Assembly: GCF_963853765.1 (NCBI RefSeq)
Contig: NC_088857.1
Span: 31,558,001-31,622,000 of the forward strand
Source of the DNA: Magallana gigas
Lineage: Eukaryota
Length of the DNA: 64,000 nt
Direction of reading: 5' to 3'
The number at the start of each line of letters is the position of its first letter. The first letter of the stretch is position 1. The notes beneath the pieces were generated by a model that had not been told where the DNA came from, ran no database searches, and saw nothing but the letters and a program-made list of their open reading frames with translations. This document shows positions 356 to 36,714 of this stretch, in pieces. Made by a program: the position numbers and the translations under genes.

Positions 356-2850
356 GATAAAAACGACATCCGAGACACTGAACGTACCGCCATTCAACCT
401 GAAATTAAAACAGAAAAGCAAAAAAATCAAGGTTCAAAGGAAGTGAAACAGTTGATTAGCACCGACGGTCTCTAAGACGGCAAGTGTTCACATTTTGGTC
501 AAAATATTTATATCCACCGAGCATTTTCTTCTCTTCTTAAAAGTATCATACAAGCAAATTGTCTATGAATACACAAATTGTTTTAAAAATTATAAAACAA
601 ATCACTCATACTATTGATTAAAACAACGTTTAGCAATATTGAAAACTCGAAATGCACAGACTACCATTAGACTTCAAAATAATTTTAGTCGTAGTAAATT
701 TTGATATGGTATCATTATTCAATGCAACATTGTGATCAACAATAACGATAGTTATCGAAATAGTTGATTTACGAAAGATTAGAATAGAGATGTAAAAATG
801 AACAATAAAATGCCATTTTTTGTCGGTTCACACGGGCTGTTGAGGTAGCCATCATTGCAGAATATTATTTTAACATAAACCGCTAACGCAGTTTATGCAA
901 TGTTTTTGCATGATTCGTTATGTTTCATATACCTACCTCAAAAGTTGCCTTTTAACAAAAATAAAATAGAAAGTAAAATTTTTGGTTATTTTCGTTTTCT
1001 TTCGTGTTCTTTTTCCATTGATAAACTTACGCATGTAATATTAGGCAAAAGACGAACATTAATAAAGCAGCTAACTCCAGGCACAAAAAACTACACAAAA
1101 GTTTTCCGGAGCATTCCATATTTTATTTTCATTCCATAGAGGTAGGTTACACCTGCTTGTTCTATATATAGATCTTATAAAAACTTATTATTTAAAGGTT
1201 TTTCCAACCATGCTAAATCGGAACAGACTCAGGCTGTTTCGAAGATCAATTTCAATAGAATAAAAACTACCACCACATCATTGATTTTCAATTTATTTTT
1301 TTAAAGGCATATATAACACACGTATCTCAAACTTTGTATATAGAAAAAACACAATGCATCTTCAGTCATTCAGGAAGTGTTACGCCTAATAAACATTTGA
1401 CAATTATTGGTATAAAAAAGATACTATTCTAAATAAAGAATTTGCAATGAAGACAATACTGCATGTAGCATTCTCATATTATATTAAACTTGATATTATT
1501 CAACTAATGATATACATGTTTATCTTTATAAAATATCTGAATACATATATTTGCATGAATAAATATTCAATAGAACTACATCATGTATGCATTATGACAC
1601 TTATTTTATAGAAGGGCCCAGAAACGCCTTCATGGTATAAATTAAAGTCCGGGTCAGTGTTTAATTGTTTTTTTTTTTTAAATTTTCACTTGTGCTTTAG
1701 TTTGAGTGATTCTTCCCTCCACAAGTTTTTGACCACTTCGTGGTAAGACCTAAGCACTGTATTTTACATGTATGTATGAAATGTTAGTTACATGCACAAG
1801 TTATCTCTCTTTGTATGAATTAAGGCAACTTTAATATATATCGATTGTATAATAATTGAAGTATTTGTAGTACAGTACATTGTCATTACCGTATCAAATG
1901 CTTATGATTATTATTATAAACCTATAAATTACCATGAACTCTAATAGTTTTGTTGTTTATCGTATTAAATCTGTTACTGTGACAAGATGGATAAGGAATT
2001 GCTGAGTATAATTGAATTATATTAGCGGTGATAATCGATTGATATCATGAAATAATTATGTATATCACATTCCAGAAACTAATGTCGAGAAACTATATGT
2101 TTACAAAACCTTTACTGCATAAATTCCGCCAGCATATAGATATAATGATAATAATGAACAGTAACTGCAGGATGTCCCAGAATATCTGATAGCATTTGAA
2201 ATCGTATCAATTAAATAATTGTCAAGAATGTGCAAATTGTGACTCAAATAAAAGTAAATTTCAATAACAACATTTAGGAGAACAGCGTACTTTTATTAGA
2301 ATTATGATGTTACAAAATAGCATCATATTTCTTTCGTTGAATTAAATTTTTATCTAGATAAATCGTACAAGAGAGCAGTCATCTTCCGGTTTAAATTGAA
2401 TTATCAAACACATACACCTGATAAAGTTGTATGAATAATGAAAAAATAATACCATGGGGAAAACCAACTCAACAAGCAACAGAGTCTTCAAATTGTGAAA
2501 AGATTTGAGAAAATGGGATACATACAGTGGCTGTTGTTAGGAATTTTAATAATCGACTTGACGTTGTCATTGATAAATCAAAGTACTGAAGTACTGACGG
2601 GAGTTGATTTTATCGATTATCATTTATTTTAAAATCAACTTATATTGCGTGGCAATTAGTTTCTAGTCTGTATTTTAATTACGTACTTTTTTGTTATATG
2701 AATTTTAATTAGACTTTTCAAACAAGAATTTAGAGAAACCCCATATGAATCATGTTGTGTAATATTTAAAGATAGATTTCAAACTATGTATTAGTAATCG
2801 AAACAATTCTAAAAATTGTATGGATCCAAGCACTATTGATATTGAACTCC

Positions 2851-2937
2851 AGTCTCGTTCAACCAGACGCTCAGCTGTCTCCGTTCATCTCCGACAAGCA
2901 TTTACGGAGACAGCCGAGCTTTTGGTTGAACAAGACT
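2851..2937. repeat. Short imperfect hairpin (MITE-like), ~34-bp arms and 19-nt loop
   Basis: agtctcgttcaaccagacgctcagctgtctccgt ... acggagacagccgagcttttggttgaacaagact. Confidence 0.7.
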
Positions 2938-3827
2938 ATATTAAACTCTGGCGTATGAATACATGCGACTACATAAATATCTAAATTTTCGTATTATATA
3001 AAATCTTACTATTTTCAAGGTGTTTATAGATAAGTTTCCTTGAAAAAGCAATGCTTCAGCATACATTACATCGAATTTTTCTATTATATTCAAGAATAAG
3101 ACTTTGTCAGCGGTGATGATTTGTGCTTAGGTCCAAACACTGTTTCACTTTCGGTTTGCCAGAGTGACTGCATAGGAGAGTTAATTAAAATCAACTCCCA
3201 AAAAGGACATCATTTATGGCACTCTCTTTAAATTTGTTGTGTTTTAATAAACAATGTTCAATTTGTCATAAACTTATGAATGTTTGTAAAATTTATTGAG
3301 TGAAATTTTACATCATATACATTTTTTGGCTAAATAAATTTAATCAAAATTATTCAAAGAGCAGATGGAACAGATATTCTGGGACACAGAAAAAATCCAC
3401 ACCTTCTGAGTCTTTTTATTTATTTTTTTCCAGATAATTTTGAAACCTTTGTGGATCACTTAAGCATTGAATGCTTATTTTTGGATATCGTCGCAAATTG
3501 AATACCGCGCTAACGTGCAGTATTCAATTTGTCTGCGCCGCTTGGTGTGTTATAGGACCGACGACATTCATAAATAATGCCAGAAACTTTGTAGAGAAAA
3601 ATCTTTTTATTAACGAGTGTATTTATTTGTAAAATTGAACGTCGCAGATTTCTAATGTAAACACAAGGGGAAATATACACTGAATGTAAATATAAACTGT
3701 ACAAGACTAATACACATCTCTAAACGTCATCAATAATAAAAGTCAGGAACAGTACTAAATAGTATGCACTCATTGCAACGTAAGCAATAAAGACAAACAA
3801 CTCAAAGGAAGCCATCAATTATTAAAG

Positions 3828-12508: not shown

Positions 12509-13315
12509 TTACTCTTTTGTTCCAGGGCCTTATTATTACTTTGAAGTTGCGATTATTCCACACGAGTTCGTTTGAGTGTTTCCACAGATTAGCAAAAATG
12601 GGAATTCAGTTAAGCAGAAGTGCAAACATTTTATTGCCTACCAACATGTATCTGGTTTTTAATTTGTAACAACAACTTTAAACAACAACCATATATCGGC
12701 TTTGTTGCTAAAGCGTATTACACTGGGGTCTAAATTGAAATGTGTGCAAATATTTACTTTTGATTAAATGAAAGTACATTAAACCTTATCCATGAAAATA
12801 AATCCAATGTAATTCTGCATAAAAGTATATCCTGGGCAATTAAAAAATCCGCGTCACCTTTCTAAAAGCATTTCTGTTGCAAAAAGGGTTTATTTTGTAA
12901 AACGAGGTACGTTAATGAATGATAAAAACACTCTCTGTGGTTGGTTTTTTTTTTTATTTCAGTTTTTCGTTTCTACTGATCACTTCATGTTCAACATGCA
13001 TATATATCTTGATACAATATTAGTATATACTTTATACATTTGCGAAAAAAAAATTACCTGAAAAGCAGGATATGACCTCTAAGCAAATTTGCATGTATAC
13101 ACGTTTTATTTTGAAAGAAATCTTTTTTTGTAAATGCATATTGGTAAAAATAACATAAATTAAACAAAACTTCAGCAATACATTTATAAAGTATGAGAAA
13201 AAAAATTGTATACTTTTAAAAAGTCTTCAAGTATACTTTAGTATATAAATGTGGACTTCAGGGATGTGGAGAAATAGTCAGTACTTAGTTCAGTCTCTTT
13301 CATGGTTTCTAATGC

Positions 13316-16300
13316 TCATTTAAGACTTCTCACATCAAATTTCTTCAGATCTAACCATTTATAGTCCGAGCGTTTAGCCTCCATGTATTTTTCCACAAAA
13401 GCCAGAAATTCTTTAGACTGGACTTTCGGGACTGTCCGGGCGCCGGATTTAGAGGGAGGGATTTTGAAGCAGCCAATATTTATCTTATCCACTGTGACGT
13501 ATTTTAGCTTGGCAACCACTCTCATACAACCGGAAAAGGAAGTGGAGTTGACATTCAAGTTGTAGAATTGTAAACAAATGCTGGCCAAATCCTTCAGTCC
13601 TGGTATGGCGGCACACAATGGAGGAGGATTTCGAGCTAAACGTATAGTAAAATAAAAAAATAACAATAAATGTAATTTTGAGCCAAAGATAGTTAATTAA
13701 TAAAATAAAATAAATGAATGCAAACTTACAACAAATATGTAGTACATGACCGATTTGAAACAATATGTTCAAATATTTATTTCACTAAATACTGACTAGA
13801 TCATCTATGTACATTAGTATAAACAGTAAAAAAAAAATCAGTTCAATTAAAAGAGGCGTAATCTATTGAAGCATATTATACATGTTTGTCCAATGAAGAG
13901 TGTTTACCTGAAATAGAGGCGTTGATGTAGACGTGTCCATCCACGCTGAGTGTGACCTCTAACCCGTAATCCTGGTCCAGGTACTTCACGTTGATACACA
14001 CTGTCATGAAATATAAACAGTAGGTAAAAAGTTCACAAAAAATCAGAATAAACCTAGCTTGCAAATGGTAAAAAATCAACACATTGACCATTAGAAAACA
14101 TGTCGACACTCTCTGTATAATTATTTTGCTAAAAATTCCTTGCAGTTCCATTTGATGAAATAGATAAAATTGCAAAATCAGATCTATTTGAGTACTAGTA
14201 TATTTGGGTCCAACACATTTTCCCTTTTAAGACCCAATTAATTAACAAGTCGTTTTAAACATTTTCTAACAAAACTCAAGCTTGACCTGTAGTTTCTCAT
14301 TATCAAGTTACTCAGCAAGTTTGAAATTAATTCTCCGAACCATAATGGGGGGAAAGTTGCACAAAAAACCCGACAGCTACTGAGCTAGAGACATCGACAA
14401 AAGACATCTCTAGCTACGTAAATAATAAGACATAGAATACTCTTCTTCAGCTCTTACCGGTGTCGTTCAGACCTATCTTGTCCACCTCTAAATGCTGACA
14501 ACATCCACACGTGTAGCCCACACAGCTACACCCGTTAGGTTCCTCCTCTACATTCTGTGGTTTGTGATCAAATACTGCCAGAAAAATGAAACCAAAACTG
14601 CTTTTATATAAAGAATAATACTAAATATATCGATTTATAATGTTTTAAATACTCAATGTTTTCACATTAATGAAATCCTAAATTGTCACTGAAAACGGGG
14701 ATGGTCAAATTACATCAGAATAACTGTAGTTAAAGTTTTCTTCGATGAAACGGTTTTCTAGACCATCGTATTCCTGTGCAAATGCATCAAAATTACAGAA
14801 CATGGGCAAAAAAAGAGTGCACAAATGTTTTATGCTTTAACCTTAAAAAATCATTTTAAAATTCTAAAATATTTTATTTGAACGTACGGTAAAAAAAAAA
14901 ATGTTTTAGTTCTCAAGCACCGCCACATCTGGATAAATGCTGCCGCGTTGATTAATTTTTTTGCCATATGGAAAAGGGGAATAACCCATTTTTCAAGTCA
15001 AACATGAAAATTAAGTTACTCCCCTTTGCACATCCACCTAGTATCTGAAGCATTACTAGTATACTTTGAAGTTAATTGGGTCCGAGAATCAAATTTTTTT
15101 ATTCTTTCCTTCAAATTTTAAAACATTTTATTTAAATTTATATTCTAGTACATGTAACAAAATGAAATCATACAAATGTCATGTTGTAAATTCTGAATTT
15201 ACCGGGTGGCAGTAAATACAAAATTTACAAAAGTAAAATCATCAACAATAGCCTACGTCCTAATATTTTTGTCACAGGTTAATGTTTTCGTCACTTTTTC
15301 ACAATTTAAAAAAATACACATACCTATCCCTCAAAGAAGAACAATTGATATCGATGAAAAGAAACAAATCCAATTTTTTTAAGACTTCTTTTTCATATAT
15401 CATCTATTTTTACCCAGAGAAAACACGATCGAAAATTAATTTCTTACGGAGATTTATAATGGGAAACGTTAATATCATTCTTTAATCATTCGGAAGTCAC
15501 TCGAAACATCTCGCATAATTTTTAACGTTACCATCTGGGTACTTTCATGTCTCTTGTAATTTAAAATTCCCGTGGGCCGTGTGTTGAGAAATCTGACAAG
15601 CTAGAGGGGTGTCTCAAGGGAGACGTCTTCAGTTTTTTTCGTATTATTGATTAACATCGTTTGATTACTAGGGTATTTGTAATTATTGAATAATTCAAGA
15701 AAATGTGCTGCATAACTATCTTGGGACAGAGTTAAACACAAATGAATTGGTCTATTAGTATTTCGTTTCTGCATGATTCTAGTGTTCCTATAGTTAACAT
15801 TTTAAACTTAAGTATAATGCACTATCCTTTGCAAACCTGTTTCATGCACAAGCGTAGAGTACTTATACATTTTTGTTGTTTAAACAAACACAAAGAAAAA
15901 ACAAAATATGTCACGGTGGCTTAGAACCCTTACATTATAAAGTGCAGTTTACAAAGCACTTAGCCATTTGAGGCACAACAATTGAAGTCTAACATTTAAA
16001 TAATATATTACTGTATTTTTTACCACGAGTTTAAGGACTTCATTACTTTTCTGAAACAACAAACGTTGTGCTTCAAATTAATAGTGTTAATGTATTATAC
16101 TATACTATACTACAATACTATAACAAAAATATAGAATACAGACCGACTCAACAAATTAATAAGCCCCTTATAATATAAAAGTCCCTCAGCATGTGTTTTC
16201 TTCATCAGTACTTTAGCATGTTTAGACTTGACTGTTAATTCAATTTCACCGACTTCTCTCCTTCACTGTTTTCTATGGCCCTGCCCATCTGATTCCAAAG

Positions 16301-16938
16301 ATGCATAATGTCTAAAGCCATGACCCCCAGTCCACCCCAGAAGGGTGAGGACCGCAACGTTGCAAATTGGCCGTGGTTTGCAATGATGCACGCAATAATG
16401 CGAATAGGGAAAAGAATTAAAGTAGTCCTGCCACAATCCCATATTTATCCTATTTTGTAAATAAAATGTCGTTTTAAAGAATGGCAGTAAACACTTCAAC
16501 TGCCGTTTTTCGAAAGCTAAAATGTATTATTTGAGTGCAACTCTCGGAGGGGATGTAGATAAGACTGAGTTAAAAAGCTGTTGAAAAATTCTACTATATA
16601 TAGGCCTATATGTGTCTTTAATCTCGGCGAGATTCGTCGAGACTGAAATTTTTTGACTGACGTCTCTTCTTCGGAAGAGACATCAAAATTTTCAGAAATA
16701 TCAGTCACATTTTTAGTCTCGACAAATCTCGCTGAAATTAACATATTTTTGAGAGTCACACTTGGACAACGAATTAACAGATAAATAACTCTACTTTCAC
16801 TTTCAATATGCTCATGTTTCTCAGCATTTTACCTCGGATACTCGGCAATGAAGACGGATGGACAAAATTAAATGTAACAGCAAGTAATGCCAAGCTTAAG
16901 TAGCCTAACATGATAAAGCTGTCTCTTTTAAATCCCAT
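13316..16938 (-). CDS. Secreted Cys-rich DUF4773-type protein
   Basis: Exons 16938(or 16911)-16833, 14574-14458, 14000-13908 and 13635-13316, all phase 1. Signal peptide MLGYLSLALLAVTFNFVHP. Motifs GCSCVGYTCGCCQH and SARNPPPLCAAIPGLKDLASICLQFY...SGC. Extra exons between 16833 and 14574 are not excluded. Confidence 0.8.
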
Positions 16939-19900
16939 CACAATATCCTTCCGCTGAAGTAACAAATGTTTACATGAATGAACTACAATAGGAAATGTCG
17001 ACTGCTTTGTAAATGCAAAAATACGCACTGATTTTCTCCGGATTTTTCATCTTCAACAATCGACCTTATTTTCTCCAGGGTTCAATAAAATGACTCAAGG
17101 AACTGTCGAAATCTGCCCAGTCCTAAGTGAAAAAATAAACTGACTCAAGATTTTTGAATTATTTGATGACAGGTTAATGATGTTATAGATATAAATATTG
17201 CGTTTAAATTGTATCAGCAGGCAAAAAAAAAGGGGGGGGGGCAAAGCCTCCCCCCCCCCACTTTCTCTCGCAGCAAACATAATTTTAATATATTAGATTT
17301 CACCATATTTTAAAAAAATAAAAATTGAAGTATCAGGGAGCTACCGCCTCTTGCCCCCGCATTTTCGGTAGAATGTAAGGAATTGAAATGAAAATAAGGA
17401 AATATTAAGAGTGATGTTGAAAATTTCAGTTACAGGAATACTACGCCCCCCCCCCCCTTTGTTTTTAACTTGTCAAGATGATGATTAGTCGAGCTCCCCC
17501 CCCCCCCCCTCTTTTTTTTTTGCTTTCGACGCCACTGCATAATAACAAAAACTGATTGACTTTCCTTTTCTGTAGTTCTACTATTTTAAAAAAAATAAAT
17601 TTTGATCACAAAAGGATGGGGACTGTCACGCGGGACCCCGGCCCCCTCTAAATCAGCCAATGGCTATTTGCCTTATCAAAAATGTTCTGTGGTCGATTGC
17701 CGTTAATTTATATAGTCACTTACATGTATTGCACAAAGTGTACACGTATTGTGTTCATGGTACCACTGATAGGAAAAAATAATTTCAAGTGTATGTAGAT
17801 ATTGAATAATATACGTAATTTACCGTTCATTGGTGATCATTCAATGGACTTTCTGGGTCACATGTATATGAATGACGTCATGACCCCGTTAATTCTCACC
17901 AACGCGGGTCAGTAGTTCATCCAACGATAAGTCAACGGCAGCTGTACATGTACTTGTAAATGTACAACATATATATAAATCCATATATGAAATTACGCCG
18001 GCGTGAAGCGATCTGAAGACCTTGCGAGGAACTACTATAGAAATGAAATACATTTTATATACTTATTCTCCCTTACTATAATGATATACATGTGTAAGTT
18101 CTTCTACATATCTACATGTAGATACGTTATTTGTGTTATTTACAACATGTGTAATATCGGTGCATCAGTTTGCATTCTTCTATACTCGTAAATGCAAAAG
18201 TTTCAATCATTTTTCATTTTAGCCTACGATACTTATCCACCTTTTGAACAACCGGCCCCTGAAATATATTGTCTCATTGAGAGAACTTAAAAATACTATA
18301 TCTGAAGGAATTCGGTGTCCTGCATCGGACGATAAATTGTCCAAAAGAAAAAAAACCCTGTTAATAAACGCTGTTTTGTTCTCATGTAAAACTGTTAAAG
18401 CCAATTACAAATCTGGCAACTGCTTTCGGCTTTATAAAAATAATCACTTGTTTAATATCTTATTTTAGAGTGAGTGAGTGAGTACATTTCTAATTTCATA
18501 ACCCAAACAGAAGTCTGGTATCGTAATCGTATCAGAATGTGCGTCATCGGGGGTTATCAATTGTCTTTATATAGAATATTGGCGAAAGTTTCTCTGTCAG
18601 AAGGGAATTTATAGTGACATACAAGGTTTACATTACAGGATTAAACACCAGTCCACAATTCAAAGGTAACTTTTGACAACGTCACAAAAAAACCTGTATA
18701 CAAATATGTAAATTATCAATTTTGATCTCGGGGCATAAAAGTCCTTAGTCAGAATTTCATGTCTACATTATAATTGTAATCATTATGTATCTTTATATTG
18801 ATGTGTCTATTTCACATAGTTTTAGTATACTAGTATGTATATAATTATGTGTGTATATTTCATATAGTTTTACATATTATATGACACATTTTAGTTGAGG
18901 GTTTGTTTAAAAAGTCAGCTACATGTGTTACATGTATTTGATATTGACCAAGATAACACACATTTTAACACTTTTATATAACCAGGTAACTTACTTACCT
19001 GAAAGGTTACCAGGTAATAAATGCAATATTTTCCTTTTCTGTCCAATATTACACACCATTCCTCAATACATTTTAAAGATTTTTGATAATATGTACAGCT
19101 AAAATTCTATAACACGTTTTTTTTAATGCATTTGTCTCACTGACACACGTCGGTGTAGTTTTGAATCAAGTAAAATGTAGCTACATATCAAAAATACAAT
19201 TTTTATTAAACAAATGCACGAGGAGGTCAGATCATTATAAGGCATAGTTTTTGAAGTGATATAATACGGGGGGGGGGGGGAAATTTCTTTGTTCATCTCG
19301 CAATTTATTCATCATTTTCATATCCTGTGAAATAACTGAACTCACATACAAGACAAATCTTTTTTGTCATTATAAACAAATTCATTCATATTCTTATAAT
19401 TTTAGCGCTATATAATCATTTCGTAATTATCGTACTTTCAATAAGTAAAAAGTCACATGCTGAGACGAAATATTTTACGTCATATCTTGAAATTGTGTCA
19501 TCATGTGGACATACATGGTGTACTCATGGCGCAAATATAGTATTTATTCATATGTGACGATTTTGTGGGAACAAAGGACAATTATACTCGTAATTACACG
19601 AACTAATCAAAATAAAGCAGAAAAAAGGATCGCCAATCATGAAATCATGTTTTTTTCATACCATTTAAATCATAGCTGGTTTATCAGAAAGTCATTTTCC
19701 ATTTTGCTGCTCGCTACATGTACGTTCTGTCAAGAGAAAAACCGACACTAAAGATAAGAACTTATACAGTGCACCATCCCTAATTTTATGTTTCATACAT
19801 TAATACATTCAAAAAATTACATGCATGTAAGGATTCTGTTCTAAACAGAGTAAAATTTAGAAAATTGTTATATATTACAAAACATTACAAAATTTTGTTT

Positions 19901-19944
19901 TCTGATATTAATACTATCATAATGCTATTTCGTGCAGATACAAC

Positions 19945-21151
19945 ATGCAAACCACTTTCCTTATCATCGGTCTTGTGACGACAGCTCTACAAGTCCAATC
20001 AACGGCCATCCCTGGCAAAAAAGCTTCATTTTTATCCATGTGTAAGCATCGCATACAAACCATTCGTTCATGTTAACTTCATAGCGGGGTAATTTCAGGG
20101 TCAATGTATATGCATTGATTGGTTAGCGTCTTTTGGCAATTTTTCTGAAAACACCCCCCCCCCCCCCAATAAAAACCAAAAAACCAGACAACTTTTAAAA
20201 ACATTAAAAAATACAAAAGTAGTAAATATATTACTGTTTAAAAAGTGTACGAATAAAAAATTATGCTCACATACTGTACACATGTATATAACATACAGGT
20301 ACATATGGCTTAAGGAGAACAAATCCCCGCCGTGAGGAAGTATCGTTTATGAATTGCATGTGAATCTCTTGTTTCAGTGGAGAACACCGTTAAATCCACG
20401 CTAGAAAAGAAACTGTTGACAGAACTGGAAAAGAACGTCGACTGGAAGAACAGCCCCAAGTAAGTCCATCAAACGGCAATGCTTCGAAATTTTAATTTCA
20501 TCACATTATTGAGGCACCTTGTAAGAATAGATATCCGTGACATATTGTTTGTACAGGTTTTACGAAGAGGCCTTACAGCTGATCAAGGAGAATGAGGGCC
20601 AAATTCTGGGTGGAATCATGAGGATGGTCATTGACAAATCAAACGGCACTGGAGTAAGTACTTGAATACAGGTGGAATATTATATAAAGGGAGGGGGCTT
20701 TATGATACCATGGGTCGGCCCGGAAATTTCTAATTAATATACTGAAGAATAATAAAATTCAGGAGTACTGGCATCTTTTTAGAAAACAAAGGTTTTGCTG
20801 GAATATTCGTACCCCACCTCTAAGATTGTCTTATGTAATATTGTAAGTTCGCTCTGATGAAAATGACCATGAATTTAGTCCTTCTTTTTACTTTATTTTT
20901 ACAGAAACTTTCCATCAAAACGGCTGAGGAGGTAGTCTCTGACTTCCTGACCTCCAGGACTCACCACAAGAGAGACGAGGACGATCACATGATGCCCAAC
21001 TACCTCAACATCAAGTTTGGCGGATTTGGTGAGTATCTAAAAAATTACTTCAACGTGAAAATTTATAAAATGGTATACCTTTAAAATTGAAGTTGACATC
21101 TTCATGTTGTTTAATGCTGCAACAATTTTTTTTTAATTTACAGGCAAATAG
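19945..21151 (+). CDS. Putative neuropeptide precursor, 135 aa, with a single C-terminal amidated peptide DEDDHMMPNYLNIKFGGF-NH2
   Basis: Five phase-consistent GT-AG exons: 19945-20041, 20378-20459, 20557-20653, 20905-21028, 21144-21151. N-terminal signal MQTTFLIIGLVTTALQVQSTA, dibasic KR site, terminal G-K-stop, and AATAAA near 21200 and 21283. Confidence 0.85.
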
Positions 21152-22029
21152 CTTGTTGGAATGTTACCACTTGCTAATAATTGCTGACAGAATTATGTGC
21201 AATAAAATTCACGGGAAAGGGCGGCTACTCTTATATATACACCATATGTACATATTATCATCTTGACTTGCAGTTCTTTATAAATAAAACATGGACTGTG
21301 ATACCATTATATACATATCTCTTAATGCACTTTGTTTCCATTGATAACTGAAGTATTTTGTTTCATCAAATCTCAAAATTGATGTTTTGTGTATAACGAT
21401 GAAAACTAAATAAACGGTTCTGGCACACGATGAGCTCAAAGCATTTTAAGCCCATACTTTCTTACCTACAAAATATATTATAAAATAGGTTAACTTGGGG
21501 CTTGGTGATCCCCAGTAAAACAATCTGATAAAAATACGATCTTGATTTGCTATTATAGAATGCTACATGTACACACTCCGCTTTTGTTGATTGCAATAAA
21601 GTGTGTAGCAATCAAATTAAGCAGATCAGGAATCTGATTTCAAACCAAATGAAATAAATAGCAATGCAATTTCCACTATAAGTACACTCATATCTTTATA
21701 AGCATGAAATTTTGTTTTAAAAAAAAATTCAAACACATAATGTACAAAACCATATTCATTTACCAGTATACATACAGATGCATTCATCGTCAATTTCAAT
21801 ATCAAAATAAAATGTATCAACTGCACACGCACCTTGCAACACATTGCACTGTCAACAACAGTTTTCCTGAAAGACCTTGACTGTTATGAACACAACGGGA
21901 CCATTATCATGTCAAACTACGCTGTCAATATCACAGTTTATACATGTACTCCCGAACAGCAAGAAAGAAGCTCTAGATCCGGCTAGCCCTGTCTGAACAC
22001 AGCAAAGATGTTACAGTAGCATAGCACCA

Positions 22030-22450
22030 GTGGTGGAATTTGAGGTTTTTTCAGTAGCAAAAAGTGTACCAGATATTCCTCAACACCAGCATTAATCATA
22101 AGATTGGAGTACCAGATATTCCTTAACACAACTGGTAATCACAAGATTGAAGTTCCAGATATTCCATGACACAACTGGTAATCATAAGATTGAAGTAACA
22201 GATATTCCATGACACAACTGGTAATCATAAGATTGGAGTACCAGATATTCCATGACACAACTGGTAATCATAAGATTGGAGTACCAGATATTCTTCAGCA
22301 TCAACGGTAGATTCTGAGGTTTTTCTCCATAATCACAGGTGGTAGATATTACTCGGCACCAGTGGTGGAATTTCAGGTTTTTTCAGTAGCCACAATATCA
22401 AAGTACCAGATATTTCTCAGCACCAGCGGTAGACTTTGAGGTTTTTCTCG
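22030..22450 (-). repeat. Tandem ~39-bp repeats and degenerate copies of the RFWD3 terminal codons in the 3'UTR
   Basis: Repeated cagatattccatgacacaactggtaatcataagattggagtac, plus 4 variants of caccagcggtagactttgaggtttttc. Confidence 0.8.
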
Positions 22451-25400
22451 GTGAGGGCAGCGAGGTAGGTTTGTTGGTTGAGCCTCAGGGTACATGTGTC
22501 CACCACCACCCCTCCTGCAGGCAGGCGCTGGACTAGCTGACTGGACGATGTGTCCCAGATGTGGACCTGAAATTGGTCATCAGGAAATATCAAAGAATAT
22601 CTTAAAGTTTGATAAAACATAGTTACCCTCTAGAACATGACAGCAAAAGAAATTGAAAATTTTCTCAAATTTTGAAGGACAATAAATTAAAAATTGGTAA
22701 CGGGTTCAAAATGTCATCTTTATTGAATCCATAATCTGACTAATTTTTAAGAGTTATACTATCTGAGTACCATCTACCGGTATACATGTATATACTATGT
22801 TCAAAAACTTCAGATTATTTCTAATCTGACATATATTTTGAAGAGTCGTACCCTATGAATTTATTCTCATTCTAACTATAATCTGACTTATTTTGTAAAG
22901 ATACACAGTACTGTAACCTATGGACCAATACTTATTTTAACTATTATTAGACGTATATTTTGGGGTGTTATACTCTATTAACCAACACTAAAACCAACTA
23001 ACCCCTGATGAAGTTTCCTCCCCGGCACACACCAGCATCCTACTGTCCTCTGCTGGATGAGTCATCAGAAGAGCTCTGGTCAGCACTGTCTGTGTCTGAC
23101 TGCCATGAAAGGTGTGGACCACGTGACAGCTACATCCGTTGTCAATGACAGCGGGGTCAACACTCAGGTTCACACAGGTCATCTCACACAGCTTCAAAAA
23201 GGTCAAGGTCATTAACAGCAAAACAACCATCCAGTCTAATATATATCAAATTTAGAGTATTGTTGAATACATGTATGTAAAATAATTAAAAATGTCATTA
23301 ATGATAAATTGATGTCATAAATGATTTGTTGTTTTTTGGCCATTATAAAAGTAGAATCTCAAAGTAACATATACATTGTTCAAAATATCTTTTGCACAAT
23401 TGATGTTAGAAATTAAACAACAAAATAATCAAGTCTGCATAAATTTTCAAATCCCCTCCATTTAACGACTGAATTCAATTGTATTTATCTGATTTTATAT
23501 TATAACTTAATAACTGACCTATATAATCATTGACTACTTTTACCTGATGTCTACTGGTGGGATGTTTAGAAGTAGGTCTGAAACTAGCTAACAGGTGTCT
23601 GGTGTGGCTCTCGAAGCACAAACTGGTCAAGTTACCTAGAGATCAACAGCACAAAGAAATGTTCACTGCATATATGTACCGGTATATTGTACCCTTGTAA
23701 TATACTGTATAGCATGTAAATGTGAAATGAATAGTATCATTAATGGTTTATATCCAGATTTCATCCAACAATAAATTGACATGTGTTTCAATACTGCCCA
23801 CCACGGAGGGTAATATATGTAAACTTAAAAGACTGAATCTTTTTATAGAAACACTACACAAAAATGTCAAATCCTAAGTATTTTCATCCATCTTTACCTT
23901 CTAGTGGCAGCATGTGCAATCTGTATTGGTTATCCTGTTTCTTCTCATAGAAGCTGATTTTATTCAACTGGCCCACGACTAAACCTCCTGGCCTAAAAAC
24001 ATAAAAAAATATGCCTAAAATACTTAAAAAACTCAATTTTGAATATTAAGCAAGCCCATCATACTATATGTATTCCATAGTAATTATAAGTGAATCTGTC
24101 CTCTCTGTTCAGTTTGAATTTTTCCATCAGAGGGACTGTCAGAAATGAAGAGCAAAACACAAATTAAATTGATAAGATAGTAAAATTTTAGTTGTTACAT
24201 GTGTATGCATATGTATGTATAATAACCTAAAGCCAGCTTGAATGTCTTTTGGAATGTACTGTAATGATACCACTGGTGACCGTATACCCTCAGTATTCAA
24301 TTCCTGGACATGCTCAGAGGTGTTCCGAATGTCAAACTCCATTACATTCCCATTGGCTTGTCCAGCATAGAAAAAATTCCTGTCATCTGTGTTCCACACA
24401 CAGCTCCAGACAGGATTGGAGAGATTGTATCTGTAAAAACAGAAAGGTTAATTTGTGTCAGTCATTTTTTGCAATTTTAAAAGTTTCTTATAGAAAACAA
24501 TACAGAATACAATTTCTGCATTTTCAATATTTTGCGTTTGAAAGAGATTGCGAAAAAAAGCAAGAAATGGCAAGAATTAAATCATCGCGAAAATTACTGG
24601 ATAAAAGGTAATTTTCTAATCAGTTGTGCTGCACCTGACCATCGTTACTAGCTAAGTTCAATACATACACTAGCTGATTTTGCACATTAATGGCTGAAGA
24701 ATATTATATGTTTGAAGGTAAAATGTCAACTACCTGTAATATCTGTTATAAACTAACTTCTATAAGCAACTGCTTTATTGCTGGATATAACAGTGCAATG
24801 TGGATGAAAAGGGCAATGCTATATATGCATTTATGTTAACAACCAGTGATTTGAGACTATAAATAATGATGACCAAGAGGTACTGATAAATGCTGGAAAT
24901 ACAAATGAAAGTTGGAAATATTTCACAAATGATTTACCATACACCATTCAATGAATGACCTTTAAATGAAATTTTCAAAGTTTTAATACAATGTTTAGAA
25001 GTGAAACTCTTCCTTATGATTTTATCTTTATTACTTTTCCTCATCAATAATCTTACGTCTGTACAACAGTATTGCTGATGACACTTGTCATCTTGGCTGT
25101 TTTATCCAATCCACAGCTCAGGAGTATTCCGTCATCCACAAACGGGTGGAAGCAGCAGTCGCGGATAGCTTTACTGTGAACAGTTAAGTACTGGGAGGTT
25201 TTGAAATCCATACAACTAATCTGTTTGGAATAGAATATACGAGTCATTGACAAATTAATAAAATTAAAACAAAGTTTTAGATTTCCTTGTGATAATAAAC
25301 ACTCCATATGCTTTTTGCAAGAATGAGACACATGATTATAACTATTAAAGATAGCTGGATAAAGAAATAATTACTTGAAGAGCATTATAATTATATAACA

Positions 25401-28322
25401 AAAAAAGATAAACAAATTACAAGGCCGTTGTGTTTTAAAGATATAAACACTGAAAATTTGGACCCGCAATGCATCTACATGTATTAAAAACTTGCCTTTT
25501 TGAAACCAAATCCTGGAAATAGAGGACTTGATGAGGGCTGGGAGACAACCAGAGTGGCCAGGGAGGGGGAGTAGGACATGACCCTGCAGTTTCCAGCCTG
25601 CAGAGACCATATCATAAAACCATACACATCATACAAAAACATGGTTCATAATAACTGTTGCTCTTCTTACTTTAAGGAGAATGGCTGCTTATATAAACCA
25701 TCAGCAGCAGATGGGAATAATGTTGTTACCGGTAATAATAACTATTGTAACAGTTGTAATTATTTATATAAAATAAAGATTTCCTTGTATTAAAAGTTAA
25801 AGAAATATATTGGTTTTTTACTTTCTTGAAAGTCTTACCTCCCAGATCTTGATAGTTTTGTCCAACACAAAGTGACCGTTAACATCTCGGACTTGCGATT
25901 GGGATGGCGCTGAACCAGAGCTAGCATCAGATCTACCAAGTTTAATTTGTATAGTAATCATAAATGCATACATCACATTAAATTCTAAATCAGGCTATAA
26001 ATACAATAAAATTAGCATTTAATTCCTCGTCAGTGAGAGGAAATGTTAATTCAGGGTCATACAACTCTTGCAATCGAAGTCAAAACCCTCTTACCCTAAA
26101 AAGCTAACGAATCATTTCAGCTTAGGTTAACTTTATACTTTGATGACATTTATAACAGAATCACAAAAAAGTATTTTTTGCTTCAAATAAAATACCAGTG
26201 AGAGATTTATTTGAAAATGTCAAAAAATAGCATTTAAACACTTTCAATGATAATAACTGGTATTACCTTTGAATCTCATTGCACAATTTTCATTTTCCAA
26301 TGTGACTACCCGGTAATTACCTGCTAGTTTGTAGCTGGCGTTTGACTTTGTCTAGCTCTGTCTTCAGTCTGTTACACTCCTCTATGGCTAGCTGGTACTG
26401 TAAACGACACTGTGCAGCTTCCATTTCCACCTTTCTTCGAACTTCTCTCTCTTTCTCCAACTCTTGTAATGCCCTGTCACGCTCCGTAGTGTCGACAGCC
26501 TGTTAAAATATTTGTACATTATGTAGTTAAATTGTTAAACTCTTTGCATTCAAAAATAGGAGAAAATACAATTTTGAAGTAACTGCACATTTGTCATTGA
26601 GTTTTTAAAAAAATATTTCACTATTCTATATATGTAATATTTTATTCAATACCAATCTCACACCTCCCAATTTCTTTCTATTCCATCAAAAACATTTAGA
26701 ATATAAACTCAAACGCATGGCTCACCTTCAGTGATTTGGCATAAAGAACCCTGATGTCTTGTCTCTTGGCTTTACAGTTACATTGGGGACATTTACCACC
26801 CTGACCCTTCAGCCATTTTTCAATGCAACTGAAAATAAAAGTTCATATTGAATACATGTACTATATAAACTGATACCAAGTCTTTGATGTGCAGGATACC
26901 TTTTGTAATATAATATAAAGCTACAATAATTGATGTATCAATTTATCACATGTAATTCATAAATTATTTGATTTTTTCCAGCTATGAAAAACATGCCAAC
27001 CTTTGTCCAAATAAATGACCACATCTTAAAGATGCAAGTCTGTGAGATCCAGAGGTGGACCATTCCTCAAAGCAAATTGGGCAGCTCTACAATATTCAAA
27101 TTTATACTGAGTAAATTTGTCAGGAAATGTATCTCTTATTAGCAAAATGATTAATCAGTTAAACCTACATTTAAAAGTCATGTTATAAAAAACACATGTA
27201 AAGCCTTAAGAATTTTTTTTCATATAGTTCCCTTCTGAAAAAAAAATTATCAAAAACTAATTGGATTATCTTACATTTCCGTCTTCATCATCATTTTCTT
27301 GATGATCACTTGCTCCTTTAGGCTTGTCTGGAGTAGACATCACTCGTCGACGCTTTGGAGTTCTGAAGTCTGAAGGGGAACTGGTTGAAGCCTGAATTAG
27401 CTGTATATTGGAGGCTGCAGGTGTTTCAAGCTGCGGACCCGGGGAGGTTGCTTGAGCACTACCGGTATTCTGAACATCAGTCACAGGTAATTGAGGTATA
27501 GCTTCTTGCCCAGGAACCTCTGCATTTTCCACTACCAGAGGAGCAGCTACTGGTGGGTTGGAGTTTTCTTCTTCAGGGTCAGAAACAATTTCCTGAAAAT
27601 TACAAAAATTCATATTGTATTTTATTATCTTCCTAAGTCAAGGATTTCTGACACTTGCTAGGGGAGGAGCAGATCAGAAACTTTTGACTTTGGAAGATGG
27701 GATTTTATTACTGGGTAAATCTATAGTTGGATTATGAAATTGAAAAAAAATTGTTATTTCAGATTTTCCCTTCCATACCACGTCTTGGTTTGATGACCTT
27801 GAATCTTCCCCCTCACTGGAAATCACTTCAGGTGACCTGTCACCTCTGTTCTCAGAAATCTCTCCATCTCCTCTATCCAAATTCTAGAAAAAAAGAGAAA
27901 GGTTATGGTGGAAAACCTCATATAGAAATATTTTCCGTAAATCAAATACATTAAATTCTTTAAATATCCAATGGTGTTAGAAGAGATTTGAACTAAAGCA
28001 TAAAAATTACCACTATACTTGAAGGACCTGGGTTTTCTGAGATATTGAACACAGGTAAAGGTGGGGCTGGTCCTAAATGTACTGGTGCAGTACGGTGAGA
28101 GACATCACTTCTTCCAGCTCCTCGACGGCTGCCAGTGAAGAATCCAGCCAAAGTCTGCTGATTTAATGAAGTAGATGGTGATGCTAGGTCATTATGAATG
28201 AACACCCTACTCCCACTTGGCGACGTTTGAATCGTATCTGTTATACTCCCTGCCTGTAGAGAGGGGCCAGTCTCAGATACCGTATTTGATTCATTATCGT
28301 CTCCATCACTCGCAGCAGACAT
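22417..28322 (-). CDS. RFWD3: E3 ubiquitin-protein ligase RFWD3 (RING, coiled coil, WD40)
   Basis: 14 phase-consistent exons: 28322-28011, 27883-27779, 27592-27275, 27086-27001, 26828-26726, 26499-26321, 25932-25839, 25597-25496, 25220-25057, 24430-24227, 23992-23898, 23635-23544, 23191-23003, 22566-22417. [50 protein letters not shown]40 segments HSKAIRD, YAGQANG, VHIWD. Confidence 0.95.
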
Positions 28323-36551: not shown

Positions 36552-36714
36552 NNNNNNNNNNNNNNNNNNNNNNNNNNNNNNNNNNNNNNNNNNNNNNNNN
36601 NNNNNNNNNNNNNNNNNNNNNNNNNNNNNNNNNNNNNNNNNNNNNNNNNNNNNNNNNNNNNNNNNNNNNNNNNNNNNNNNNNNNNNNNNNNNNNNNNNNN
36701 NNNNNNNNNNNNNN
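36552..36714. other. Assembly gap (163 N)
   Basis: Run of N that hides the last TBC1D7 codons and stop. Confidence 1.

Follow-up and report, generated by a model that had tools for sequence, protein, structure and literature searches.

LOC105333446 of Magallana gigas, an oyster-restricted candidate precursor of a C-terminally amidated secreted peptide

The window analyzed here is a stretch of 64,000 nucleotides from Magallana (Crassostrea) gigas (contig NC_088857.1, positions 31,558,001 to 31,622,000), and all coordinates refer to it. It contains a gene, LOC105333446, whose coding sequence, established by direct reading and recomputation, consists of five plus-strand exons that join into 408 nt and encode 135 amino acids and a stop codon. 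Every intron is of the GT..AG type, and the exon phases match. A 5' untranslated region (5'UTR) exon at 18606..18665 (at least 60 nt supported, donor GT at 18666) precedes the start-codon exon at 19938..20041, which comprises 7 nt of 5'UTR, the ATG at 19945 and codons 1 to 32 plus one nucleotide. The coding part of the latter (coding exon 1, 19945-20041) specifies, over about residues 1-19, a predicted signal peptide and, at residues 25-26, a dibasic pair that is conserved. Coding exon 2 (20378..20459) covers residues 33-60, with both end codons split, and coding exon 3 (20557..20653) covers residues 60-92, including an Asn89-Gly-Thr sequon at 20642-20650. Coding exon 4 (20905..21028) carries residues 93-133 and the first base of Gly134. 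It includes a predicted convertase site, Lys114-Arg115 (20968..20973), and, directly behind it, the predicted 18-residue peptide DEDDHMMPNYLNIKFGGF (20974..21027) with the conserved core MPNYLN[IT][KR]FGGF. The last intron splits the Gly134 codon between G and GC, so that the last coding exon consists of GC AAA TAG only. These 8 nt (21144-21151) complete Gly134 and add Lys135 and the stop; the remainder of the terminal exon (21144..21372) is 3'UTR, with AATAAA at 21201 and 21283. The short form of the 3'UTR ends at about 21340-21372 (transcript contig L004 reaches 21372), and a long form extending to 22122 was seen in run X4, which carries a second species label. The 135-residue product is free of Cys and contains dibasic pairs at residues 25-26, 43-44 and 114-115.

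A previous reading of the DNA, made from the letters alone and referred to here as the sequence-only reading, had presented this gene as a hidden five-exon precursor. Its splice model was correct to the base, as judged by recomputation, by the four junctions in RNA and by identity to XP_019924949.2. The gene is hidden with respect to the list of open reading frames (ORFs), which recovers none of the exons intact; ORF 20857..21084, for example, continues past the last donor into the intron. It is not hidden with respect to annotation, since RefSeq already carries the identical 135-residue model XP_019924949.2 as "uncharacterized protein LOC105333446". The gene model is thus public, and only its interpretation would be new.

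Upstream of the gene, on the minus strand, is a DUF4773 (PF15998) gene with a secreted, Cys-containing product (13057-13637, 13908-14004, 14459-14581 and about 16834-16893), and downstream, in convergent orientation, an RFWD3-like RING/WD40 gene (about 22417-27400, minus strand) that shows exon-by-exon conservation with Crassostrea virginica. The long 3'UTR end at 22122 is located some 300 nt from the nearest conserved RFWD3-like block (about 22417). The same arrangement, with DUF4773 and RFWD3-like genes flanking the gene on the opposite strand, was found in C. virginica and in both Saccostrea species. At the Ostrea locus, a 717-residue gene occupies the RFWD3 position and the upstream neighbor is different: the DUF4773 gene was not seen there, and a PAN-domain gene was called. 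In two contigs from two runs (L005 and L016), of which one run belongs to a related Crassostrea-type species, antisense DUF4773 mRNA continues directly into the 5' end of the gene (18575-18665); the L016 join passes through the homologue of the 18.6-kb 5'UTR exon. This suggests first exons that overlap head to head or a shared bidirectional promoter, and an assembly chimera is also possible. Contig L005 furthermore contains an alternative far-upstream 5' exon, 13908-14019, spliced to 19938. Elsewhere in the window, 163 N at 36552-36714 mark an assembly gap or a masked stretch.

RNA was placed on positions 17500-22500 and came from three contig runs belonging to different studies, one of them with the second species label, and from raw poly-A reads (run X21). 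All four coding joints (20041>20378, 20459>20557, 20653>20905 and 21028>21144) were present in each of the four RNA runs. The 5'UTR joint 18665>19938, also of the GT..AG type, was observed at a depth of 982 (side 60) in run X1, at 650 in X4 and in one read of X21. In accordance, transcript contig L004 covers 18626-18665 and continues from 19936 onward. Loose read ends behind 21029 correspond to CAAATAGCTTG, which confirms the spliced Gly-Lys-stop end; together with joint 21028>21144 they bear out the split Gly codon and the Gly-Lys-stop exon that the sequence-only reading had described. The first mates of X21 map to the minus strand, so the RNA is of the plus strand. Unspliced contigs amounted to less than 1% of the spliced depth. 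Furthermore, 14 runs from several studies, for which an RNA origin is on record or was guessed, contained 25-44% of the words sampled from 19700-21500, the share that the exons alone would give. At position 20040 the reference has G (Met32), whereas the four RNA runs, the one labeled as another species among them, all have A (Ile32); this A is an allele, and position 32 is Thr in other oyster genera. In intron 1, a poly-C stretch of some 14 nt (20154-20167) draws low-complexity poly-C reads; in the raw-read run, it leads to joints with 17500 of the "goes back" and "opposite strands" kinds, which are spurious.

Contig depth reached 1000-3000 in oyster metatranscriptomes that carry no tissue label. 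This exceeds the depth of most neuropeptide mRNAs outside ganglia and counts against the reading as an amidated-peptide precursor; however, the contig runs were chosen because they hold the gene, so their depth is no measure of its expression. In the poly-A run X21, the level of the gene was close to that of its neighbor.

Orthologues are present in M. angulata, C. virginica, Saccostrea echinata, S. cucullata and Ostrea edulis. The ORF of exon 4 as query returned genomic ORF fragments only, and full-length proteins were obtained with a longer fragment as query. C. virginica contains two identical loci, and the O. edulis orthologue is 52% identical. The structure of five exons with an 8-nt last coding exon was found in five of five genomes (M. 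gigas and four others with exact models), and exons 2, 3 and 5 measure 82, 97 and 8 nt in each species modeled. DNA and six-frame protein searches of the whole 564-Mb M. gigas genome retrieved the gene itself and no paralogue; two other matches of 45-50 nt, both to intron 1, are chance or repeat hits.

Outside oysters the searches remained empty. Among 1.84 billion representative proteins, the profile search credibly matched oyster sequences and genomic ORF fragments only, and matches in the word-indexed searches were likewise confined to oysters. In Pfam, nothing scored above E = 0.018 or reached any gathering score, among PDB sequences a profile search found no match at E <= 10, and the best ESM Atlas scores (0.76-0.77) were below the lead level. 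A match to a named family, which the sequence-only reading had listed as an outcome that would remove novelty, was therefore not found in the Pfam, profile or PDB searches. One apparent non-oyster homologue, P0026, was rejected as spurious: it seems to be a piece of an unrelated enzyme that is not secreted and by eye resembles pyrroline-5-carboxylate reductase, and the shared words are limited to PQFYEEVL..IKE.

The C-terminal end is the most conserved part of the product. The sequence-only reading had proposed to check whether orthologues keep the KR site and the terminal Gly-basic end, and all six oyster species do: the predicted convertase site is KR in five and RKR in Ostrea, and the core MPNYLN[IT][KR]FGGF followed by Gly, Lys or Arg, and stop is present in each. 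The codons are GGC, GGT or GGA for Gly134, AAA (Lys) or AGA (Arg) for the last residue, and TAG or TAA for the stop, which directly follows the last basic residue in all five genomes. These codon changes, like the replacements K135R at the last residue, with C-terminal Arg instead of Lys in Ostrea, and K129R inside the peptide, are all of a kind compatible with an amidated peptide. Among Magallana, Crassostrea and Saccostrea, the core has undergone no non-synonymous change at saturated dS. For the same three genera, dN was 0-0.02 in residues 114-135, compared with 0.19-0.31 in residues 21-113 (dS >1). The comparison of M. gigas with S. echinata revealed non-synonymous changes at none of 52 tail sites and at 52 of 215 pro-region sites (Fisher p = 6e-6). 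As dS exceeds 1 between genera, the conservation of the tail reflects selection and not a lack of time. These comparisons demonstrate selective constraint on the KR site, the core and the Gly-basic-stop end, just as the RNA demonstrates the transcript and its splice structure.

Variation in the predicted peptide is found at its N-terminus, which reads DEDDH, DEDDR, DEDDN or DDDR and is followed by one or two Met. Amidated peptides with a receptor-binding C-terminus usually vary at the N-terminus. The pattern of the tail would thus fit a peptide that is released at KR, loses its basic end to a carboxypeptidase and is amidated at Gly, with a C-terminal pharmacophore. Judged by its sequence, the near-invariant stretch formed by the last 20 residues bears every hallmark of a cleaved, amidated signaling peptide across oyster genera.

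The N-terminal part appears to have the layout of a secreted protein. By eye, residues 1-19 comprise a short polar n-region, a hydrophobic core of 13-15 residues and Val-Gln-Ser before the predicted cut. The signal-peptide-like layout (Val-x-Ser at -3/-1, by eye) and the start at Met1 are common to all orthologues, which agrees with the secretory N-terminus that had been proposed. Two longer products, P0013 (187 aa) and P0018 (189 aa), in which alternative 5'UTR exons, read in frame, add 52-54 N-terminal residues, were considered as the main product and rejected because the signal peptide would be buried and the models of other species all begin at Met1; these N-termini are probably annotation artefacts. 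The dibasic pair 25-26 (20017-20022) is located 5-6 residues past the predicted signal-peptide cut and is present in all species as KK, KK, KR or RK. A Gly precedes it in Crassostrea (TAIPG-KK), whereas Saccostrea and Ostrea lack this Gly. The pair may be a site at which the pro-region is trimmed N-terminally.

The pro-region itself evolves under purifying selection (omega 0.13-0.18), is 52-73% identical across genera and contains the invariant blocks VKST, W-x-N-x-P-x-FY, SNGTG and VVS-x-FL. The N-glycosylation sequon formed by N89, G90 and T91 is invariant in all seven aligned sequences. An AF2 model built on an alignment of five sequences predicts four helices over most of the chain and places the C-terminal tail outside the helical part, at a low confidence (pLDDT 43.6). 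Constraint, sequon and predicted helices make it a serious, if unlikely, rival explanation that the product is a helical glycoprotein of about 13 kDa, secreted without being cut at KR, whose Gly-Lys end is no amidation signal. The acidic and then hydrophobic tail would in that case be a docking or sorting motif, and the high RNA depth in runs without a ganglion label would find a ready explanation. An uncut protein, however, leaves unexplained the joint conservation of KR, of Gly134 through three synonymous codons and of a basic last residue, as well as a tail that is far more constrained than the body, and no fold or family match connects the weakly modeled chain to a known protein type.

A further explanation is suggested by the charge distribution. 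The pro-region has a net charge between -1 and +1 and the tail one of -3, so that a cut at KR would part an acidic tail from a helical body, as in a host-defense precursor from which an antimicrobial domain is freed. The mytilin and myticin precursors of mussels are host-defense analogues of such a cleavage, and the nearest named language-model neighbor of the oyster protein is a cluster of amphibian bombinin precursors. The score of the latter (0.76) is nevertheless under the threshold for a lead. The body is nearly neutral, which argues against a cationic antimicrobial domain, and it has about 90 residues and is glycosylated. Moreover, the tail of a host-defense precursor is expected to be less conserved than its body, and the opposite was observed. 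We consider this explanation the least probable of those weighed here.

We thus favor the reading of LOC105333446 as an oyster-restricted candidate precursor of a C-terminally amidated, secreted peptide of 16-18 residues, to which we assign a probability of about 0.58. Removal of the signal peptide (about 19 residues) would be followed by a prohormone convertase cut after Lys114-Arg115, a carboxypeptidase would take off the C-terminal Lys (Arg in Ostrea), and peptidylglycine alpha-amidating monooxygenase would turn Gly134 into the C-terminal amide. The predicted product is DEDDHMMPNYLNIKFGGF-NH2, with a calculated monoisotopic mass of 2140.93 Da; receptor binding probably resides in its invariant C-terminal dodecamer. 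The pro-region of about 90 residues, predicted to be helical and N-glycosylated, would form a co-product that is conserved and acts as a carrier or sorting domain or has an activity of its own. We infer all of these processing steps, as well as secretion and a signaling role. That C. gigas makes amidated peptides from precursors of the KR...G-K/R type is known from mass spectrometry (PMC4200219). As to the cells that would produce the peptide, "neuropeptide" is one possibility beside an endocrine, epithelial or haemocyte origin.

A shorter product, FGGF-amide, would result from monobasic cleavage at Lys129, a position at which a basic residue (K/R) is conserved. Monobasic sites usually have a basic residue at P4, P6 or P8; none is present at these positions here, so we judged this cleavage unlikely.

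The amidated-peptide reading can be extended in a more tentative manner. In this doubtful but possible case, a family of peptide hormones would have arisen within the Ostreidae, with this gene as its founder and a bifunctional precursor giving rise to both an amidated, receptor-activating peptide of 16-18 residues with an invariant MPNYLNxxFGGF-amide pharmacophore and a conserved, glycosylated helical co-product. Under this extension, the peptide gene may be co-regulated with its divergently transcribed DUF4773 neighbor.

The precursor was not found in the main text and supplements of oyster, scallop and pan-mollusc neuropeptide surveys, and the peptide is not in the lists of PMC4200219, PMC8398477, PMC12564202 and PMC5996578, in which databases of known precursors were searched. 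A literature search with the peptide strings, the LOC and XP identifiers and the two SRA runs that hold full-length contigs gave no match. Absence from the 2021 oyster ganglion survey weighs little, since that survey was driven by homology and an orphan would be undetectable in it. Oyster peptides have been cataloged mostly by homology, and lineage-restricted precursors therefore escape; LOC105333446 is plausibly such an unpublished, lineage-restricted candidate. Oysters are major aquaculture species in which peptide signaling bears on spawning, feeding, settlement and stress. The candidate is concrete and can be tested at low cost with a single mass, a synthetic peptide and a probe. If confirmed, it would provide an oyster-specific ligand for receptor deorphanization and show cleanly, in a peptide gene of recent origin, that selection acts on the amidation signal; should no such peptide be produced, LOC105333446 would still encode an ordinary taxon-restricted secreted protein. 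Taken together, what the sequence-only reading had observed was confirmed in full, and its interpretation is supported in part.

The closest resemblance to a known family concerns the end of the peptide. Copies in the Aplysia precursor NP_001191625 and in a Siphonaria precursor carry ...GFGGFGK(R/K), matching the FGGF-Gly-Lys end observed here, a Pinctada precursor fragment ends in ...SSFGGFG, and the Limax peptide GFDRISGASDFGGFamide shares the FGGF-amide end with the predicted oyster peptide. The repeats of C. gigas pedal peptide 1 (EKC18589) read ...GSFGGFS-KR, with Ser-Lys-Arg in place of Gly and a basic residue. The earlier statement that the peptide matches no molluscan family consequently holds for the rest of the peptide and for the precursor layout but not for the FGGF-Gly-basic end, which occurs in pedal peptides. 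On account of these molluscan members, the gene might derive from the pedal-peptide/orcokinin family as an offshoot that has diverged strongly and holds one copy. The head x-(F/L/M)-D-x-I of this family is, however, missing from DEDDHMMPNYLNIKFGGF, and the 10-30 tandem copies that dibasic sites separate in pedal-peptide precursors contrast with one C-terminal copy in the oyster precursor; with neither FDxI head nor tandem copies, membership fails. Pedal-peptide precursors, moreover, are without a long conserved helical pro-region and differ from LOC105333446 in architecture and exon structure. The likeness extends over 4-5 low-complexity residues, and the profile search made no connection and gave no statistical homology. 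We consider such an offshoot improbable; the similar ends, short, Gly-rich and aromatic, are best explained by convergence.

Two other resemblances had been put forward by the sequence-only reading. The enkephalin-like appearance of the end is superficial, since the opioid motif is an N-terminal YGGF and the oyster peptide has a C-terminal FGGF. The predicted peptide resembles oyster peptides of the cholecystokinin (CCK)/sulfakinin type in its acidic residues, its single Tyr and the Gly-rich stretch that precedes an amidated aromatic end. Peptides of this type are characterized by a D-Y pair and a C-terminal R-F/W-amide. The predicted peptide has no D-Y pair, and its end is G-G-F instead of R-F/W-amide. 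Sulfation of the Tyr, which had been considered, is unlikely because Tyr125 is embedded in P-N-Y-L-N and has no adjacent acidic residue, the acidic residues being 6-9 positions away.

In its overall organization, the oyster precursor compares best with those of arthropod PDF and molluscan cerebrin, which give rise to a single C-terminal amidated peptide. There is no sequence likeness to them, the oyster pro-region is longer, glycosylated and well conserved, and the oyster family is confined to oysters. The order of elements, however, is matched throughout: predicted signal peptide, pro-region, Lys-Arg, a predicted peptide of about 18 residues, and Gly followed by a basic residue at the C-terminus or close to it. 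The oyster precursor also shares with the PDF/cerebrin type a peptide that is far more conserved than the pro-region preceding it.
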